Sequence record: AP018399.1
Length of the DNA: 64,000 bases
Reading direction: 5' to 3' (one strand)
The position numbers and the translations under genes are program-made. The notes under the pieces are model-generated. The model worked only from the letters and a program-made list of their open reading frames with translations. It ran no database searches and had not been told where the DNA came from. Positions 7,907 to 54,862 of this stretch are shown here, in pieces (positions within the stretch are counted from its first letter, which is position 1; each line of letters starts with the position of its first letter).

Positions 7907-8329
7907 CTAAGGTACGAAGTACCGAATCTTATCTTCTGCCCGCCTCAACCAATCTTGTCGTTCTTCCAACAACATTGTCAGAACAGTGTTACCAGACAGT
8001 ATTTCATGTCTCATCCACTGAATGTCTTCCTTCAAATGTAATATGGTCCGACGATGAGCAATCTGGTCACTCGTCCAACGATACACATACTTCTCATATG
8101 GGTACGTATTCTTAGGACGACTATCAAACATGAAATACTCGCCTTCCTTCAACGACAACAACTTCTGGTCAGCTTTAACACGACAAAGCTTGGTTTCGCT
8201 ACAACGCATATCAGCTAACTCCAACGGATAACTTAATCCCCATTGGTCCCACCGACCACGACGCTTCATCAAAACGCTATAAAGAGCATTCGCTGAACAG
8301 TCAGGTGGCCTAACGACGATTCCTGTCAT
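7907..8329 (-). CDS. hypothetical protein
   Basis: Minus ORF ending at a bidirectional hairpin (about 7873-7905). Confidence 0.6.
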   Translation of the reverse strand: MTGIVVRPPDCSANALYSVLMKRRGRWDQWGLSYPLELADMRCSETKLCRVKADQKLLSLKEGEYFMFDSRPKNTYPYEKYVYRWTSDQIAHRRTILHLKEDIQWMRHEILSGNTVLTMLLEERQDWLRRAEDKIRYFVP

Positions 8330-8726
8330 ACGCTGCATTCAACTCATCAATAATCACTTCATCATCCACCCGCAACTGCTGCCAGATTAAGTCCGGAACG
8401 TAATGACCCTTGTCCGCTTCCGGCTTGGCATCATACTTAATCTCAATTGCAATCTTCACAACCTTGCCATCATCCACACCATCCAAGTACACATTGTAGT
8501 TGACACACCCATTGTCTCCAATGTATGCCTCAAACTTGTTGTAATTGTCTAGGTCAGCCTCATAGCCGTTGTCGTCAAGAAGCCCTTGAGCAAATTGACG
8601 AACCGTAGCTATGATTTCTTTGTTTGGGGGCATAAAAGGTTCCAGAGGATAAAAATTTTGCCAAAAAATTTCTGTGAAGGCAATTATAGAAGATTGTGTT
8701 CCCATTGTCCAGCCATTGTAGGCCAA
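8310..8726 (-). CDS. hypothetical protein
   Basis: 138-aa ORF with TAG stop. Confidence 0.6.
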   Translation of the reverse strand: MAYNGWTMGTQSSIIAFTEIFWQNFYPLEPFMPPNKEIIATVRQFAQGLLDDNGYEADLDNYNKFEAYIGDNGCVNYNVYLDGVDDGKVVKIAIEIKYDAKPEADKGHYVPDLIWQQLRVDDEVIIDELNAAYDRNRR

Positions 8727-26726: not shown

Positions 26727-27134
26727 CTAGTTTTTGTTCGGTGGGAAGGTATAATGCCGCTTTGACACAGGCGAACCGCAATGCTTGCAGCGCCCGTGCA
26801 TGATGTAGTAGCGTTCGGTTAGTTGATTCGTGAAACGGTTTGTGCTTTCCCAGCCGTCACCCTGTACCCAGCGGTCAACCTCATGCACGTCGCTTTTGCA
26901 ACGCATGGTGATGGCCTCGACCTTGGCCCGTGCGATGGTCACTTCACGTTGCGTTTCCGCTTCGATTGCCTTCGCATTGGCCTCGGCGGCTTTCGTCTGA
27001 GCCGCTAGGATTTGGATATCTTGACGGCGTGCGATGTAGCAATGCACGATGGTCCAGAGAGGGCCGAAAATGCCCTTGAATTGACGTGTGGCGCTCACAT
27101 GGGTGAACACCACGTCGATTGGTTCCTGACTCAT
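26727..27134 (-). CDS. hypothetical protein
   Basis: MSQEPID start; TAG stop. Confidence 0.65.
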   Translation of the reverse strand: MSQEPIDVVFTHVSATRQFKGIFGPLWTIVHCYIARRQDIQILAAQTKAAEANAKAIEAETQREVTIARAKVEAITMRCKSDVHEVDRWVQGDGWESTNRFTNQLTERYYIMHGRCKHCGSPVSKRHYTFPPNKN

Positions 27135-39076: not shown

Positions 39077-39185
39077 GGGAATGTAGCTCAGAGGACAGAG
39101 CGCAGGGCGAGGAAGGGACTGGTTTTCCACCAGTAAACCCATCCAATCTCAGAAGTCAGTGGTTCGAATCCATTCATTCCCACCA
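39077..39185 (+). ncRNA. tRNA-like RNA with about 33-nt expansion of the anticodon arm
   Basis: GGGAATG/CATTCCC-A-CCA, normal D and T arms, 40-nt hairpin in place of the loop. Confidence 0.8.
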
Positions 39186-39357: not shown

Positions 39358-39446
39358 GGACTCGTTCCCATAGCTGGCCGAATGGAGCGGACTCTTAATC
39401 CGACAGCGAAAGCTCATCGTAGGTTCGAATCCTACCGGGTCCACCA
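39358..39446 (+). tRNA. tRNA-Lys(CTT) with long variable arm
   Basis: Loop CTCTTAA; V-arm AGC-GAAA-GCT-CATC. Confidence 0.85.
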
Positions 39447-43739: not shown

Positions 43740-43934
43740 ATGACAAACGAAAAAGACATAGCTACAAGGGTAGCTGAAAAAGAAGCTGAGATTGAACGTT
43801 ACAAAGAAATCCTCCACCGGTACCTAACCGGACCCTCACGAACCACTCGCTGGTACAACAACGGCAAGGTTCATCTGGAAGAGCTAGAAGCAGAACTAGC
43901 TGAACTCAAAAAAGAACTTGACTCTCCAAGTTAA
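43740..43934 (+). CDS. small coiled-coil protein
   Basis: 64 aa. Confidence 0.55.
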   Translation: MTNEKDIATRVAEKEAEIERYKEILHRYLTGPSRTTRWYNNGKVHLEELEAELAELKKELDSPS

Positions 43935-43974
43935 TCTGCTATAATTACCCAATCTTCCCAACAGGAACACTTCA

Positions 43975-44286
43975 ATGCCTTGCAGTGATGGTGGTGTGGC
44001 GTATCCCCCGAGCAAAGAAGAACTGGCCGAGCGCGCTTTCATCAAGCGTGCCCCCGGTATGCTCTGCTCGGCCTGTCGTGCGCTGGAATCGTTCGGCTAC
44101 GACTTCGACCTGAACCCGGAACTCGCCGACTGGTGGGCCAAGCACAAGGCCGAAGATGCCGAGCGTGAGCGCAAGGAACACGCCAAGCGACTGGAACTGG
44201 AACAGGTGAACGAAATCATCAAGAAGCCGTTCAAGAACCTGACGGCCGAAGAAAAGCGTCTGCTCAAGAAGCACAACTACCTCTAA
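43975..44286 (+). CDS. phage hypothetical protein
   Basis: MPCSDGG..LCSAC..WW..HK..D.R. Confidence 0.8.
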   Translation: MPCSDGGVAYPPSKEELAERAFIKRAPGMLCSACRALESFGYDFDLNPELADWWAKHKAEDAERERKEHAKRLELEQVNEIIKKPFKNLTAEEKRLLKKHNYL

Positions 44287-44295
44287 GGAACCAAC

Positions 44296-44835
44296 ATGAA
44301 ATACATTCTCCTGATTCTCGCTCTGATGTTCTCGGCTCCGGTCTTCGCACAGCAGACCGAACAGCGCACTCCGAGCGAACAACTGAACGCTGAAATCGCT
44401 CAGATGAGCGATGCACAGAAGGCCGAAGCTCTCAAGGCCATCCATGCCGGTCAGTCCGATACTGCGGCCAAGGCTCGCGAGTGGATTGATATCGGCAATG
44501 GCCTCGGTGCTGGTCTGGCCGCTACCGCTGAAAAGCTGGGCGTGGTTGCCAACGACTTCGCCAAGTCTCCGGTCGGCAAGCTGGCAATGGTTCTCATCAT
44601 CTGGAATTACATGGGTGATGACCTGTTGGGCGTCATCATCGGCTTCCCGATGCTGTTCCTCGGTGGCCTGATGTTCGTCTACCAGATGCGCAAGACCTAT
44701 GGCATCTACAACGAAAAGGGCAAGTTCATTCAGTACGACGTGGTTGCTCTGAATGACAGCCGTTGTGGCCCCGGTGTGTTCATGAGCATCGTGTTCGTCA
44801 TCTACACCATTGTGTCGATTGTCGTCATCTGCTAA
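44296..44835 (+). CDS. membrane protein with signal peptide
   Basis: SP plus multiple TM segments. Confidence 0.8.
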   Translation: MKYILLILALMFSAPVFAQQTEQRTPSEQLNAEIAQMSDAQKAEALKAIHAGQSDTAAKAREWIDIGNGLGAGLAATAEKLGVVANDFAKSPVGKLAMVLIIWNYMGDDLLGVIIGFPMLFLGGLMFVYQMRKTYGIYNEKGKFIQYDVVALNDSRCGPGVFMSIVFVIYTIVSIVVIC

Positions 44836-44841
44836 GATAAC

Positions 44842-44917
44842 GGCCCGTTAGCTCAGCGGTCAGAGCAAGAGCCTCTAAAACTCCGGGTCGTGGGTTCGAA
44901 TCCCACACGGGCCACCA
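44842..44917 (+). tRNA. tRNA with CTA anticodon (amber suppressor), copy 1
   Basis: Loop CT-CTA-AA; acceptor GGCCCGT/ACGGGCC, A73. Confidence 0.85.
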
Positions 44918-44924
44918 ATCAAAT

Positions 44925-45000
44925 GCTTTCGTAGCTCAGCGGTCAGAGCAAGAGCCTCTAAAACTCCGGGTCGTGGGTTCGAATCCCACCGAAAGCGCCA
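44925..45000 (+). tRNA. tRNA with CTA anticodon (amber suppressor), copy 2
   Basis: Same body; acceptor GCTTTCG/CGAAAGC, G73. Confidence 0.85.
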
Positions 45001-45040
45001 AGTTGTTGACAAACTCCCATCACTAAATTATACTTGTGCC

Positions 45041-45355
45041 ATGAACGAAATCATCCAGAAGATGTTCCCCACTGGCACTCTCAATGGCCGTGGTGGTACC
45101 GAAGTGAACGGTCTGACCAAGGGCACGGTTCCGGCTGGTACCATTCTCAAGAGTGGACAGGACAAGTTCGACAACAAGGGCCGTCGTGAATTCTACGCGG
45201 TCGAACTGGATGGGCATGTCGCGTACCTGCGAGTGTGCGAAGCATATCCGGGTAGTGGCTATGACGAATTCGCGGTTATACATCGCGTCGTCAAAGCCGA
45301 AGAGACGGAAGAAGTGAATGAAATTCTCAACACCGTTTCTCGTATGACCAGCTAA
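45041..45355 (+). CDS. hypothetical protein
   Basis: Own promoter. Confidence 0.7.
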   Translation: MNEIIQKMFPTGTLNGRGGTEVNGLTKGTVPAGTILKSGQDKFDNKGRREFYAVELDGHVAYLRVCEAYPGSGYDEFAVIHRVVKAEETEEVNEILNTVSRMTS

Positions 45356-45362
45356 AAAGTAG

Positions 45363-45452
45363 TTGACAAGTTCGATTTTTGTAGTAAAGTATCAATCTCG
45401 GTGACGGCATAGAGGCCACTCACTGGTTCTTTAACAACTTGAGCGGAAACAA
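45363..45452 (+). promoter_or_regulatory. promoter plus rrn-like boxA leader
   Basis: TTGACA-N16-TAAAGT; hairpin; CACTGGTTCTTTAACAACTT. Confidence 0.6.
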
Positions 45453-45453
45453 G

Positions 45454-45646
45454 TTCATAGACTGAACATGCCTCGGTAGGTCAGTATGGTGGCAACACCA
45501 TCTGGGGATGAGGACATGCTAGGAACCAATATGCTTTGGATACGCAGTGGTCGTTCACTAGCCACGACTACGGTATACGCTATCAGCACACAATATGCAT
45601 TGAATGTGCGGCGATTTGAAAGCTAGAGGCGTGTTCAATCTATGAA
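45454..45646 (+). ncRNA. 193-nt structured ncRNA candidate
   Basis: 19-bp terminal helix TTCATAGA-C-TGAACATGCC / GGCGTGTTCA-A-TCTATGAA; GCAA tetraloop hairpin inside. Confidence 0.6.
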
Positions 45647-45650
45647 TTTT

Positions 45651-45775
45651 TGGTAGGTAAGCAAGTGGGCAACGTAAGACGGCAATGGTGTAGGTATCCG
45701 TGAGGTATCAGAGTACGGTTGAGTCTCCCAGAAACCGTTTCAACTTCGTGAGTTCGAATCTCACCCTACCAGCCA
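45651..45775 (+). ncRNA. 125-nt tRNA-like RNA with expanded core
   Basis: TGGTAGG/CCTACCA-G-CCA; T arm GTGAG-TTCGAAT-CTCAC. Confidence 0.75.
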
Positions 45776-45782
45776 ATTCTAT

Positions 45783-45847
45783 GCACAGGTTACTTGGAAG
45801 CATCCGGTTGCGCACCGTGATGGGTGGTTCGATACCACTTCTGTGCC
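45783..45847 (+). ncRNA. truncated tRNA-like RNA
   Basis: GCACAGG/TCTGTGC, T arm with TTCGATA, reduced D arm, no CCA. Confidence 0.5.
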
Positions 45848-45861
45848 GCGATTCGTATAGT

Positions 45862-46008
45862 ATTCTGATGGCGAAATAGGTAGACGCGGGGGTCTAGGCC
45901 AATATGGAGAAGGGAGCTAAACATTCCCTCTGCTGCTCATGGTCGGAAACTGCTGTGAAAGCGTTGCAGCAAAACGCTGACCGTGTGGGTTCGACTCCCA
46001 CTCAGAAA
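45862..46008 (+). ncRNA. Leu-type tRNA scaffold with large insertion
   Basis: D arm TGGCGAAATAGGTAGACGC, T arm GTGGG-TTCGACT-CCCAC, TTCTGA/TCAGAA. Confidence 0.6.
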
Positions 46009-46009
46009 T

Positions 46010-46430
46010 TACTATATAACAGTATGGTCGTAATCCCTTTAAAATGAAGGGCGTTCGGACGCGGGTTCGATTCCCGCCACGTCCACCACATGCATCTTAT
46101 AGCCAGAACTGAATCTGGTAAGAGGTAGTCAGCCACATTGAACCTTTCAGTAGAGCGCTGACCTAAGTCGCATGTAGTAACCCGCTTTAGGGTGCAAGTG
46201 ATGGGCGTGCCAAGGTTTCGACGGGCGAAGATAGTGGAGAAGGCGACTAGCCAGAGTAGGCTCTAAAACTAAAACCTAAAGTAACTGCCAACGCAAATAC
46301 TTTCGATTACGCACTAGCTGCCTAATCCCAAGCACATCCAGCACTTGGTCACCGAACGCTGGGCAATAGCAGTCCTTGGACTGTCTATTGTGAAACATCT
46401 TCTGGTTCAGCCAGCCTAGGCAAAAGACGC
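46010..46430 (+). ncRNA. ssrA: tmRNA, two-piece circularly permuted; tag (A)ANANTFDYALAA
   Basis: 3' acceptor piece ends CACGTCC-A-CCA at 46088; 5' piece GGGCGTG..TTTCGACGGG starts 46203; G3:U70; tag ORF 46287-46325; outer ends approximate. Confidence 0.9.
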
Positions 46431-46989
46431 ATGGCGGTATGGCACTCCGCATACAGAGGGTGTATTCACAATATGCAGTTCGTTATTGAGAGGAAATGTA
46501 GGTTCGATTCCTACGGTCGCCGCAGACCCCACTATGCTGGTCTGTGAAAAACAGTCGATATGGGTTAATATGGAAAACGCCTCTCATCTTTCAAATAGGA
46601 GTTGACAATGAGCATTGTTTTTGCTACTATGTCGGCTTCTGTAACAAGCTACGCCCTTGAGTAAGACAGTCAGGGAGTAAGCTCTTAATGTGAGCATGGT
46701 CGCCCCCACCTTTTGATAGGCTAGCCGGGGAGAGGTTCGAATCCTCTAAGCACCGTTAGGCTGAGACGAAAGGACTACGTTGCGAAGCATTGCACGCCAA
46801 TTCCGGAAACGGCTGGTAGTGTTAGCATCCGACTACAAGGGCACCAAATTAGGTGTTGACAAACGAAGAAAGTATGGTAATATGTACTTCTTCACCGGTA
46901 ACCACTGACGATTGGCCCACCGCAAAAGGGCCGAAACAGAGAGACACAAGCGAGTTTACCTCCTTCCTCGCCGTCTCCTGTCTGGTTTG

Positions 46990-47785
46990 ACAACTTGAGT
47001 GCGGAAACAATCTCAAGGTGGAATAGCGTACAGTGATGTGCGTAAAGTGTGGCCCGCTCAGGCTGCGCACCATGCAAATGGCTCCATCAAACAAGCACCG
47101 ACTCCGGGGCACGCCAAAAGTGTGTCACGGCCCTTGTGAAGAACCACGAGGGAACTTGGAAAAGGTGCCCGACAAGCTAGTCTTGGGACAACTGAGACAG
47201 TTTCCACCCGCAAAGTGGATTAGGGATGCAACACGGATACCAAGCACTAGTCAAGGTGTAGAACATAAGCATGAGGCTGCAACCAAGTGCGATGTTCAGT
47301 GAAGTGGGACTGTTTAACAGGCAGAACCGCATATACAATCCGAGTAGCCGCAAGCGAAAGGATACAGGGGCGTGTTGTATTTGGTACTTCAAAAGGGTAT
47401 CGAGCAACGGCAACACACGTCCTGAGCAACAAAACAACTTCATAGGTTAATGAAATTAATTAAACGCAAAGTTGTTGCCGGTGCATGATGAAAGTGACGT
47501 AATGCTTGACACGCAAGTGAATCAAGCCATTCCGAGGCTCGCAAGGCAGAGGGGTGTTGTGGGAAAGTCGCACGTTTGGGGTCGAACCCTTTACTGCTCG
47601 CAAGGCAGGCGGTAGACAGAACCATGAATAGTCATGCACGACAGTGGAAATGCCACCACTTTAATCTAGGCCGTCATGGTTGCTACTCACATGAGTGAGT
47701 GGATAACGGTAGAAACTTCGCTCGCAAGCGGAGTATAATGACCGGAAAGGTAACCAATCAATGCTGTAATCTCAGGCAGGCTTTT
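46990..47785 (+). ncRNA. about 800-nt giant structured ncRNA, GOLLD-like candidate
   Basis: No credible ORF; many GCAA/GAAA-capped hairpins; own promoter; embedded in the tRNA cluster. Confidence 0.55.
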
Positions 47786-47847
47786 CCAATAAATTCAAGA
47801 CCTTGCAGCTTTAAGCGCAATCACACTAAATAGATTTACATTTCTAT

Positions 47848-47933
47848 GCGGGTGTGGCCGAGTGGTCGATGGCACTAGTCTTCCAAACTAGACTCAGAAA
47901 TGGGCGCGAGTTCGAATCTCGCCACCCGCTCCA
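47848..47933 (+). tRNA. tRNA-Gly(TCC) with long variable arm
   Basis: GCG/CGC-U73 acceptor; V-arm CTCA-GAAA-TGGG. Confidence 0.85.
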
Positions 47934-48058
47934 AATTCAAAGAATTCAAGACAGATGTACACTGGACTGAATCGTCATTAGCGCCCAAGGGTGCAGAGAG
48001 TTCCGCTAGTATCTCGCTGCAACGACGTTAATGAATGTTCGACTAGCTCCAAATTTGA

Positions 48059-48137
48059 CGCGCGGTACAATCAATATCGGCAGATGGGCACCCTCATAAG
48101 GTGTCGGTTGGGAGTTCAAGTCTCCCCTGCGCTACCA
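48059..48137 (+). tRNA. tRNA-Met(CAT), initiator-like acceptor
   Basis: C1xU72 mismatch; anticodon stem GCACC/GGTGT. Confidence 0.75.
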
Positions 48138-49679: not shown

Positions 49680-50408
49680 ATGAAAATCACATCAACGTGG
49701 CTCCTTACATCCGCTGCCCAAGTCGTCATCACGATTGCTGTGGGCGCGTTCATGCTGGTCAATGCCGCAGTGATTGGCTTCTATGTCATTGAAGGATATG
49801 GGAATTATCAGAAGAAGGAATCTGCGGACGTAATCCTCACCGGTCGCGTTCACACGTTCTCGTCTCTGGAATTCACCACGAATCCGGCCGGTACCATGCG
49901 TACCTGCGTCGGGGTGACCGCTAGCAACGGTCGGATGGTGGTTCGCGAACTCGGTGATTGGGAAGGAAACCTTCCGGCCGGTGACTTCTGTGGGCAGCTT
50001 TTCAGCGCCAGCAACCTCACCAACTGGAAGCATATGGCACCAACATCCAACGGCACCAGTGTGCTTGAGAAGGTGTTGTGGTCCATTGCTTTCTTCGTCG
50101 TGTTCATGAGTGGTGCGTATCTGGTGGCGTCGATTCCTGCCAATCTGGTGGCTATCGCATTGCCGGGACTGGCTCCGATTGCCAAGTTGATGGCGTTGGC
50201 GTTCACGCTTCCTGTGCTGCTGTTCTGGGCAGTGTTCGTCACCAGTGCATGGCAGTACCATCCGTCGTATTGGAAGTCGCCTGACGGCTATGTGGTCGAG
50301 ACTGAGAAGGTCTTCATCACGCGAGACAAGCGAGTGTTCACCGCTCCGGAAACGTTGTTCGGATGGACCTCAAGCAATACGATGCAAGAACGAAAGGTGT
50401 TCGAATGA
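49680..50408 (+). CDS. multi-pass membrane protein
   Basis: Three TM segments. Confidence 0.75.
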   Translation: MKITSTWLLTSAAQVVITIAVGAFMLVNAAVIGFYVIEGYGNYQKKESADVILTGRVHTFSSLEFTTNPAGTMRTCVGVTASNGRMVVRELGDWEGNLPAGDFCGQLFSASNLTNWKHMAPTSNGTSVLEKVLWSIAFFVVFMSGAYLVASIPANLVAIALPGLAPIAKLMALAFTLPVLLFWAVFVTSAWQYHPSYWKSPDGYVVETEKVFITRDKRVFTAPETLFGWTSSNTMQERKVFE

Positions 50409-50608
50409 GTTTCTTCAAGTGGTATGACCGGCATCCGAAGAATCGGTTCTGGTTCACCATCGGTGTCATCGCATTCGTCCTGATTCCTCCTGTAGTGACA
50501 TGGACGGCTCCGAAATCACTGACGTGGATTGCGATTCTGCTGAATGCTGGCATTGCAGTGCTGCATATGCATAACTGGATGAAGTTGAAGCGTGGTTCCA
50601 AGTCGTAG
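50405..50608 (+). CDS. small membrane protein
   Basis: Two TM segments; TAG stop. Confidence 0.65.
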   Translation: MSFFKWYDRHPKNRFWFTIGVIAFVLIPPVVTWTAPKSLTWIAILLNAGIAVLHMHNWMKLKRGSKS

Positions 50609-50993
50609 AGAACAGCGCTTCTACAAGAAGGCCAGAGAAGCAAGCAGTCGTTCAAATCACTACAAGGCCAAGATTGGTGCGGTAATTGTCACAGGGAACT
50701 ATGTCCTTTCAGAAGGGTGCAGCCGTGAGAAGAGCCATACAAGACAACACCGGTACGACCGTAGGATGAAGTACCACGGTGGTCAGTCGAAGCTTCATGC
50801 TGAGATTGACGCCCTTGTGTCATCTGGCCGTGTCGATTTGACTGGTGCCGAAATCTACATCTACAGGGAAGACAAGAAGGGTAATCTTGCCAACTGTAGA
50901 CCTTGCGTTAGTTGTACACAGGCGTTGAAGGACGCTGGTGTGCGTCACATCTACTACACCCACAAAGAGGGGTTTGCTTATGAGCAGTTCTGA
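50592..50993 (+). CDS. cytidine/dCMP deaminase-family protein
   Basis: KIGAVIV, LHAEIDAL, CRPCVSC..AL...G.R.IYY. Confidence 0.85.
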   Translation: MVPSRREQRFYKKAREASSRSNHYKAKIGAVIVTGNYVLSEGCSREKSHTRQHRYDRRMKYHGGQSKLHAEIDALVSSGRVDLTGAEIYIYREDKKGNLANCRPCVSCTQALKDAGVRHIYYTHKEGFAYEQF

Positions 50994-51363: not shown

Positions 51364-51454
51364 GCCACTTTGCCTGAGTCCGGTCGATAGGAACTGCCTT
51401 GTAAGCAGTCGGGATAATACCCCATCGCAGGTTCAAATCCTGTGGGTGGCACCA
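51364..51454 (+). tRNA. tRNA-Thr(TGT) with long variable arm
   Basis: Loop CT-TGT-AA; V-arm GGG-ATAATA-CCC-CATC. Confidence 0.85.
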
Positions 51455-53996: not shown

Positions 53997-54085
53997 GACG
54001 CGGTGCCGGAGTCTGGTTGAACGGGATGGACTGCAAATCCATAAGCGAAAGCTCATCACAGGTTCAAATCCTGTTCGCGTCTCCA
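53997..54085 (+). tRNA. tRNA-Cys(GCA) with long variable arm
   Basis: U73; V-arm AGC-GAAA-GCT-CATC. Confidence 0.85.
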
Positions 54086-54773: not shown

Positions 54774-54862
54774 GGGTCGGTCGCATAGTGGCCGAGTGCA
54801 ACGGGCTGTTAACCCGTCGAGTTAATACTCCATCGCTGGTTCGAATCCAGCCCGGTCCGCCA
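54774..54862 (+). tRNA. tRNA-Asn(GTT) with long variable arm
   Basis: G73; V-arm GAGT-TAAT-ACTC-CATC; G3:U70. Confidence 0.85.

Follow-up and report, generated by a model that had tools for sequence, protein, structure and literature searches.

Two amber-suppressor-type tRNA genes differing at their acceptor ends are conserved as a pair near a tmRNA gene in the standard-code jumbo phage XacN1

Phage suppressor tRNAs are usually treated only as tools of stop-codon recoding, and the question raised by the locus described here is what two such tRNAs might do in a phage that uses the standard genetic code. The window, the whole stretch of 64,000 nt that we analyzed, comes from the Xanthomonas jumbo phage XacN1 (AP018399.1:310001-374000) and spans the final 8.8 kb of the unique region and the greater part of the 65.9-kb direct terminal repeat on the right. 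A 3-kb segment including the two genes is 100% identical to XacN1, and the window was placed in the record by offset from it. The existence of two suppressor genes is known already: 'two suppressor tRNA genes' with anticodon CUA were published for XacN1 by Yoshikawa et al. in 2018 (PMC5852040), and both genes carry the GenBank label 'tRNA-Sup' in AP018399.1. These authors took the terminal repeat to act early, counted amber stops in 18 of 592 genes, and found that in-silico read-through of the amber-ended genes gave no similarity and no targets; the difference between the two tRNAs goes unmentioned in their paper (PMC5852040). Relative to the literature searched, the conserved pair, its XacN1-specific homogenization, and the link of the corresponding tRNA class to tmRNA appear to be new. 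XacN1 is a cultivable, standard-code phage in which a conserved amber-suppressor pair lies beside a phage tmRNA, and the two members of the pair differ only at the end that is read by aminoacyl-tRNA synthetases.

ARAGORN, Rfam and alignment confirmed the arrangement described in the initial annotation, namely two 76-nt genes 7 nt apart (sup1 and sup2, Table 1) with bodies that are the same from position 8; the identity extends from position 8 to position 65. The loop CT-CTA-AA and the A27:C43 and C31:A39 mismatches noted there are likewise present in both genes, leaving only G28:C42, A29:U41 and G30:C40 paired in the anticodon stem. The described difference in acceptor and discriminator also stands. 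The 13 differences between sup1 and sup2 are confined to the acceptor and discriminator, which together make up 15 positions (chance approximately 7e-13), and 7 of 7 acceptor pairs are Watson-Crick in each gene; this difference is not noise. The Rfam tRNA model (RF00005) scores the two genes at 64.2 and 63.4 bits, compared to a gathering score of 29. Both have the cloverleaf, U8, G18, U33, T-loop TTCGA and 3' CCA of an elongator tRNA, as well as CUA at positions 34-36 of a 7-nt loop with U33 and a purine at 37, and both are genuine, well-formed tRNA genes of the amber-suppressor type. ARAGORN labels them tRNA-Pyl because of the anticodon alone. The pylT architecture comprises a long anticodon stem, a 3-nt variable loop, a small D-loop lacking G18G19, and an atypical T-loop; the label was rejected because sup1 and sup2 have a standard D-loop with GG, a 5-nt variable loop, the T-loop TTCGAAT, and a 3-bp anticodon stem. 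Neither pylS nor pylBCD was found among product names in the inspected parts of the AP018399.1 annotation.

Table 1. Coordinates of features in the window
Feature	Position	Strand	Description
ORF459	8310..8633	-	TAG-terminated ORFan
ORF509	26727..27134	-	TAG-terminated ORFan
tRNA-Lys(CUU)	39358-39446		long extra arm
sigma70-like promoter	43918..43945	+	TTGACT-16-TATAAT, 11/12; upstream of ORF086-ORF087-sup1-sup2
ORF087	44296..44835	+	hydrophobic protein, directly upstream of sup1
sup1	44842..44917	+	tRNA(CUA), 76 nt, adjacent to ORF087; acceptor GGCCCGT/ACGGGCC, A73, encoded CCA; ARAGORN, Rfam
sup1-sup2 spacer	44918..44924	+	7 nt, ATCAAAT
sup2	44925..45000	+	tRNA(CUA), 76 nt; acceptor GCTTTCG/CGAAAGC, G73, encoded CCA; ARAGORN, Rfam
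sigma70-like promoter	45006..45034	+	TTGACA-17-TATACT, 11/12; just after sup2, ahead of ORF088
two-piece (permuted) tmRNA	45996..46416	+	tag ANANTFDYALAA, stop TAA; ~1 kb downstream of sup2; ARAGORN, Rfam
tRNA-Gly(UCC)	47848-47933		long extra arm
ORF551	50405..50608	+	small TAG-terminated ORFan; TAG inside overlapping start of next ORF (50592-50993)
tRNA-Thr(UGU)	51364-51454		long extra arm, 91 nt; 97.8% conserved in L275
tRNA-Cys(GCA)	53997-54085		long extra arm
tRNA-Asn(GUU)	54774-54862		long extra arm

According to E. coli identity rules, a CUA anticodon combined with A73 favors LysRS, and combined with G73 favors GlnRS or other readers of G73 such as TrpRS and AsnRS; the identity of laboratory tRNA(CUA) molecules often shifts to Gln or Lys depending upon discriminator and acceptor. 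The acceptor determinants for GlnRS (1:72, 2:71 and 3:70) are missing from sup2. Similarity of the shared body gives no isotype for either gene: it is 79% similar to the phage's own tRNA-Lys(UUU), and its best matches in E. coli genomes are prophage tRNA-Ile, tRNA-Asn and tRNA-Arg. In IMG/VR, the GCTTTCG...CGAAAGC-G end is carried by tRNA-Asn (11) and tRNA-Arg (4) genes with unknown hosts, a lead rather than an assignment. Discriminators of phage tRNA(CUA) genes in general are A73 (49), G73 (32) and U73 (14), and the discriminator varies even among apparent orthologues (A73 in phage Xoo-sp13, G73 in the IMG/VR locus L047), which could mean that it matters little. Charging by two different enzymes is probable, because discriminator and acceptor differ and both versions are conserved (see below). 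It is plausible, with the chances about even, that sup1 and sup2 place different residues at UAG. If two residues are inserted, the pair would represent a natural and deliberate dual decoding of one codon, and XacN1 would also provide an experimental handle on the role of suppressors in non-recoded phages.

Among sequencing runs, XacN1-related sequence was located in metagenomes only, public soil metagenomes among them, and in no transcriptome of an infection; a wastewater run labelled 'RNA' resembles DNA. Two soil contigs from two studies, X1 (7.6 kb) and X4 (7.1 kb), were compared to positions 43900-46500 of the window and are known through difference counts only. Both contain the two tRNAs and show approximately 85% identity over ORF086/087, and ORF088 is replaced in both. 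Compared to XacN1, their sup1 stretch has 7 substitutions and 2 indels (including A>G at 44870, a missing A at 44877, and an extra T after 44884), and their sup2 stretch has 0-1 change. The pair is adjacent in X4 as in XacN1, and 247 nt are inserted between the genes in X1. A farther relative came from a metagenome scan, the 43-kb L275 (JACCDJ010454453.1), of which L277 is a larger piece of the same contig. The gene order of L275 is that of XacN1: supA, supB, two-piece tmRNA, tRNA-Gly, Leu, Glu ... Pro, Pro, Thr, Trp, Gln, Gln, with an ORF087 homologue (58% amino acid and 66.8% DNA identity) upstream of supA. The supA acceptor and A73 are those of sup1 and the supB acceptor and G73 are those of sup2, at 15 of 15 positions each. 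supB is 97.4% identical to sup2, with 2 differences in the body, and the supA body shows the same 7 substitutions and 2 indels relative to sup1 as were counted in X1 and X4. Compensatory changes are found in supA at 29:41, 30:40 and 51:63, with 27:43 (U/U) and 31:39 (C/C) unpaired. The supA-supB gap is 652 nt and contains two ORFs, compared to the 7-nt spacer of XacN1. Directly after supB lies an HNH homing-type endonuclease gene (PF01844; L277:5669-5947, equivalent to L275 ~1345-1626) that takes the place of ORF088 in XacN1; what follows sup2 and what fills the inter-tRNA spacer differ in every relative seen, marking an insertion hot spot.

These comparisons indicate that the two acceptor types are old and were kept as a pair in XacN1, L275 and, judging by difference counts, X1/X4; 30 of 30 acceptor and discriminator positions are unchanged between XacN1 and L275 (neutral expectation approximately 6e-6) despite approximately 33% DNA divergence nearby. 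The region is a mosaic, its orthologous tRNAs being 66-100% identical between the two genomes, and together with the HNH gene this mosaicism could mean that the conservation of sup2 and of the acceptors reflects recent exchange and not purifying selection. The initial annotation had viewed the pair as identical bodies with swapped acceptor stems; this holds for the structure but not for the origin, the genes being apparent old paralogues whose bodies were homogenized only in XacN1, as judged against X1, X4 and L275. The identical bodies thus seem to be a derived state peculiar to XacN1, since the nearer X1/X4 and the farther L275 share the divergent sup1-type body. Gene conversion from sup2 to sup1 is the likely cause. 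The 3' end of the conversion tract would fall within positions 64-65, a location expected if the T and acceptor stems were under selection to stay intact. Exact scans of IMG/VR for the XacN1 body, the sup2 3' half and the sup1 5' half gave no matches, and of the 23 matches to paired C31/A39 loops separated by 65-90 nt, none is a tRNA(CUA) tandem; the IMG/VR loci L021 and L130 each have two tRNA(CUA) genes, with unrelated bodies.

The same data bear upon whether the pair is simply redundant, with body and anticodon, both shared, giving the two tRNAs the same amino acid and the acceptor differences lacking function. Such redundancy would agree with the acceptor stem being the most variable part among phage tRNA(CUA) genes of the same C31/A39 type, where double changes are found at 7 of 7 pairs, with the existence of near-identical bodies carrying unrelated acceptors (L043/L070 93%, L047 90%), and with the discriminator differences between apparent orthologues. 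We consider it unlikely, however, because both acceptors and discriminators remained unchanged between XacN1 and L275 next to DNA that diverged by a third, while the acceptor stems of the tRNA-Leu, Glu, Pro and Trp orthologues did change, and because the conversion tract in XacN1 left exactly the acceptor ends untouched.

The gene for a two-piece tmRNA found downstream of sup2 is unannotated in AP018399.1 and absent from the XacN1 paper. Its linkage to the suppressor pair is kept in L275 (tmRNA at 2512-2852, tag ANAETFDYALAA), such that the module proposed here, a C31/A39 tRNA(CUA) and a permuted tmRNA in the same orientation and no more than a few kb apart, is found in both genomes. The association extends to IMG/VR, where a permuted tmRNA is present in 16 of the 120 listed C31/A39 loci (among them L031, L033, L035, L041, L044, L076, L078, L092, L096, L115, L116 and L118) compared to 2 of 117 control loci (p = 9e-4); at other tRNA(CUA) loci the count is 3 of 101. 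In 17 of 17 tRNA(CUA)-tmRNA pairs the two genes lie on the same strand, mostly 0.1-1.3 kb apart, the tRNA frequently being the sole tRNA of the locus, and at least 11 different tags are represented. A two-piece tmRNA is also carried by the methylophage Melnitz, where it is permuted and lies behind early promoters as in XacN1, but the Melnitz paper (PMC9004378) reports no linkage of tmRNA to a suppressor tRNA. A review citing Ueda 2002 describes read-through by suppressor tRNAs as an established source of tmRNA substrates (PMC8012679). As another potential rescue factor, ORF295 was considered as an ArfB-type protein and rejected, since it corresponds to PTH2; ORF360 corresponds to YqeY. Pfam searches of ORF086, ORF087, ORF088 and the L275 inserts identified no families. 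The plus strand from 43900 to 48000 contains 9 near-consensus sigma70-type promoter-like sites, compared to 2.8 expected, located ahead of nearly every small gene or RNA, and this richness fits early transcription by the host polymerase.

The account that we judge on balance to be probable, if by no means secure, combines a pair with two charging identities, a gene conversion in XacN1, and a general, partial read-through of UAG coupled to tmRNA. According to this account, sup1 and sup2 would be co-transcribed with ORF086-087 from the sigma70-like promoter upstream, processed, and charged by host synthetases, probably by two different ones. In XacN1 only, the interior of sup1 (minimally positions 26-63) would have been overwritten from sup2 by conversion between the adjacent genes, with selection retaining only those tracts that spared both acceptor stems. 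The least certain step is the action itself, which would be a general and partial read-through of UAG during infection, mostly on host messages, with the phage tmRNA handling ribosomes that reach mRNA ends after read-through; the host-directed version is speculative. The cost of such read-through to XacN1 would be low because few of its own genes end in TAG.

A rather unlikely extension of the host-directed version is that the module makes UAG ambiguous on purpose by means of two suppressors, two host synthetases and a phage tmRNA, with XacN1 immune through its purge of TAG. Host or competitor messages ending in UAG would then be read through, the extended or non-stop products would be tagged and cleared by the phage tmRNA, and two identities would confer robustness across hosts or to loss of one charging route.

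The stop codons of XacN1 were analyzed in 309 kb, with positions 65001-310000 of the record joined to the window and genes called based on codon usage. XacN1 uses the standard code. The 358 called genes end in TAA (235), TGA (117) and TAG (6, or 1.7%), with TAG ending 2 of the 97 genes called in the window. This agrees with the initial annotation, in which most genes were seen to end in TAA or TGA, and the TAG stops that it listed at 8310, 26727 and 50606 are the annotated CDS ends of ORF459, ORF509 and ORF551. The scarcity of TAG is specific to stop positions because the trinucleotide TAG is commoner genome-wide than TAA (7040 and 5849, respectively). ORF coverage is 88.7% with code 11 and 90.3% with TAG as sense, a gain within that of the control in which TGA is sense (90.6%). 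When all TAG triplets in the 309 kb were screened for 50 or more coding-like codons on each side, 2 cases appeared, both off-frame inside ORF180 and ORF369, and no TAG stands in frame between coding segments; the same two-sided test yielded 13 TAA and 4 TGA cases that are ordinary same-frame neighbors. The genes for capsid, portal, terminase, sheath and baseplate, as well as a 3313-aa ORF, are intact. The relative L277 has the same suppressor pair, but TAG ends 9 of its 32 called genes (28%), compared to 2 of 97 in the equivalent XacN1 region (p = 5e-5), indicating that TAG avoidance is a trait of XacN1 and not tied to the pair. Stop preference has thus diverged sharply between the two despite the shared pair; for example, XacN1 ORF085 stops with TAA, and the L277 gene of the same length (64 aa) at the corresponding position stops with TAG. 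XacN1 is also the one with two sup2-type bodies, which may be relevant but, with just two genomes involved, is a remark only. On the short IMG/VR loci, a per-locus gain in coverage under code 15 was seen in 12 of 104 compared to 18 of 107 controls and so did not tell the two groups apart, and the pooled TAG share was 10.7% compared to 19.3% in controls, a difference confounded by GC.

TAG-recoded phages (crAss-like, Lak and other code-15 phages; Borges et al., Peters et al. PMC9523058) likewise encode a tRNA(CUA), for which, as for sup1 and sup2, charging by host enzymes and expression ahead of the late genes are presumed. In these phages the structural and lysis genes contain in-frame TAG and coding density is low under code 11, neither of which is found in XacN1, and XacN1 for its part has two suppressor genes with different acceptor ends. 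XacN1 might still represent an intermediate of TAG reassignment by codon capture, with stops purged, suppressors gained and in-frame TAG yet to come. The low share of TAG among stops, in our gene call and in the published one, at a time when the trinucleotide is not rare, would agree with this, as would the presence of two suppressor genes, and the order of events fits the proposal of Borges et al. (10.1101/2021.08.26.457843). We regard such an intermediate as quite unlikely, and the early stage of recoding offered by the initial annotation is not supported: in-frame TAG is absent and code 15 brings no gain, L277 uncouples the pair from the purge, the GC content of XacN1 is 52% whereas the proposed path relies on low GC, and the term 'intermediate' names no function.

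A tuned read-through of specific phage genes, also suggested there, is not supported either. Programmed read-through of a few TAG-ended phage genes, giving rise to two C-terminally extended isoforms, would be in keeping with the persistence of TAG in ORF145, 277, 434, 456, 459, 509 and 551, and the ORF551 equivalent in L277 is also TAG-terminated. It is very unlikely nonetheless, given that all of the TAG-ended genes are small ORFans, that the reading frame past their stops extends for only 2-42 codons and forms no in-frame joins, and that the published read-through search gave no database similarity for these extensions; no conserved coding extension past a stop was found in XacN1, and programmed read-through is not supported there. 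The conservation of the ORF551 stop is explained by its position inside the overlapping start of the next gene, the L277 counterpart of which matches the dCMP-deaminase Pfam family.

The weak anticodon stem of sup1 and sup2 was examined by comparison with other phage tRNAs. BLAST against phage records identified similar tRNA(CUA) genes in the tRNA arrays of the tRNA-rich jumbo phages Xoo-sp13, RAS14/CM1 (Stenotrophomonas), Phosso (Sinorhizobium), CBB (Pectobacterium) and GAP32 (Cronobacter). The loop CUCUAAA followed by A39 is invariant among these genes and those of XacN1, and the D and T arms are similar. Each of these phages has one tRNA(CUA), always with A73, whereas XacN1 has two, with A73 and G73. 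Positions 31 and 39 form a normal U:A pair in CBB, GAP32 and Phosso, whereas RAS14 and Xoo-sp13 share the C31/A39 of XacN1; in RAS14 the pairs 28:42 and 29:41 are altered on both sides. No tmRNA was found at the tRNA(CUA) loci of Xoo-sp13 and RAS14. The Xoo-sp13 gene (L002:2995-3070, corresponding to MN047793.1 36791-36866; acceptor GGCCTTG, A73) is an unannotated sup1 orthologue. A CUCUAAA-type loop around CUA is also found in the E. coli laboratory suppressors (supE, supF, su7 and the synthetic tRNA(CUA) series), and is a context known to favor suppression. The laboratory suppressors are single-base mutants of cellular tRNAs with a 5-bp anticodon stem, whereas the phage class is natural and conserved, with a stem of 3-4 bp.

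The C31/A39 arm is present in at least 120 IMG/VR contigs, with 106 tRNA(CUA) genes among the matches listed. Of 104 phage tRNA(CUA) genes sampled without bias, approximately 15 (~14%) have it, and 31:39 is otherwise U:A (54), A:U (21) or U:G (7). We analyzed covariation in 46 distinct sequences of the C31/A39 class, using 500 shuffles and slid controls. Cloverleaf cells are paired in 91.8% of cases compared to 71.1% when shuffled, and cloverleaf covariation is 0.595 compared to 0.185 (reached in 0 of 500 shuffles), with slid controls at 0.098 or below. The pairs 28:42, 29:41 and 30:40 are formed in every case, with 14, 14 and 1 double changes, respectively; 31:39 is paired in none, and 27:43 lacks pairing in 18 of 45. 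U33 and the A36-A37-A38 portion of the loop are invariant, and the whole loop CTCTAAA is the same in every relative compared. Since the three inner pairs are always formed and show double changes, the weak stem is a trait that a functional class of RNA has maintained and not a sign of decay, although three pairs might make sup1 and sup2 poor decoders. That they are non-decoders, whether decaying pseudogenes or tRNA-like decoys or processing signals, as the three Watson-Crick pairs and the lack of known targets could be taken to imply, is most improbable in light of the high Rfam scores, the encoded CCA, the invariant loop residues, and the compensatory changes that keep the three-pair stem in over 40 distinct sequences and in L275 supA. 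The conserved three-pair stem and the suppressor-tmRNA link represent testable leads for tRNA and ribosome-rescue biology.

Other RNAs were noted in the window. A full-length GOLLD RNA (RF02032; 227 bits compared to a gathering score of 150) lies unannotated at 47365-47778, between the tmRNA and tRNA-Gly; none was found in L275 at the gathering score. Two Rfam tRNA matches lack an ARAGORN call (39077-39182, 45.6 bits, 106 nt; and 48060-48132, 31.3 bits) and may be either the pseudogene of the XacN1 paper or insertion-bearing tRNAs. Five XacN1 tRNAs of 86-91 nt, those for Lys(CUU), Gly(UCC), Thr(UGU), Cys(GCA) and Asn(GUU), have a long extra arm (Table 1). In bacterial tRNAs a long extra arm is normally confined to Leu, Ser and Tyr.
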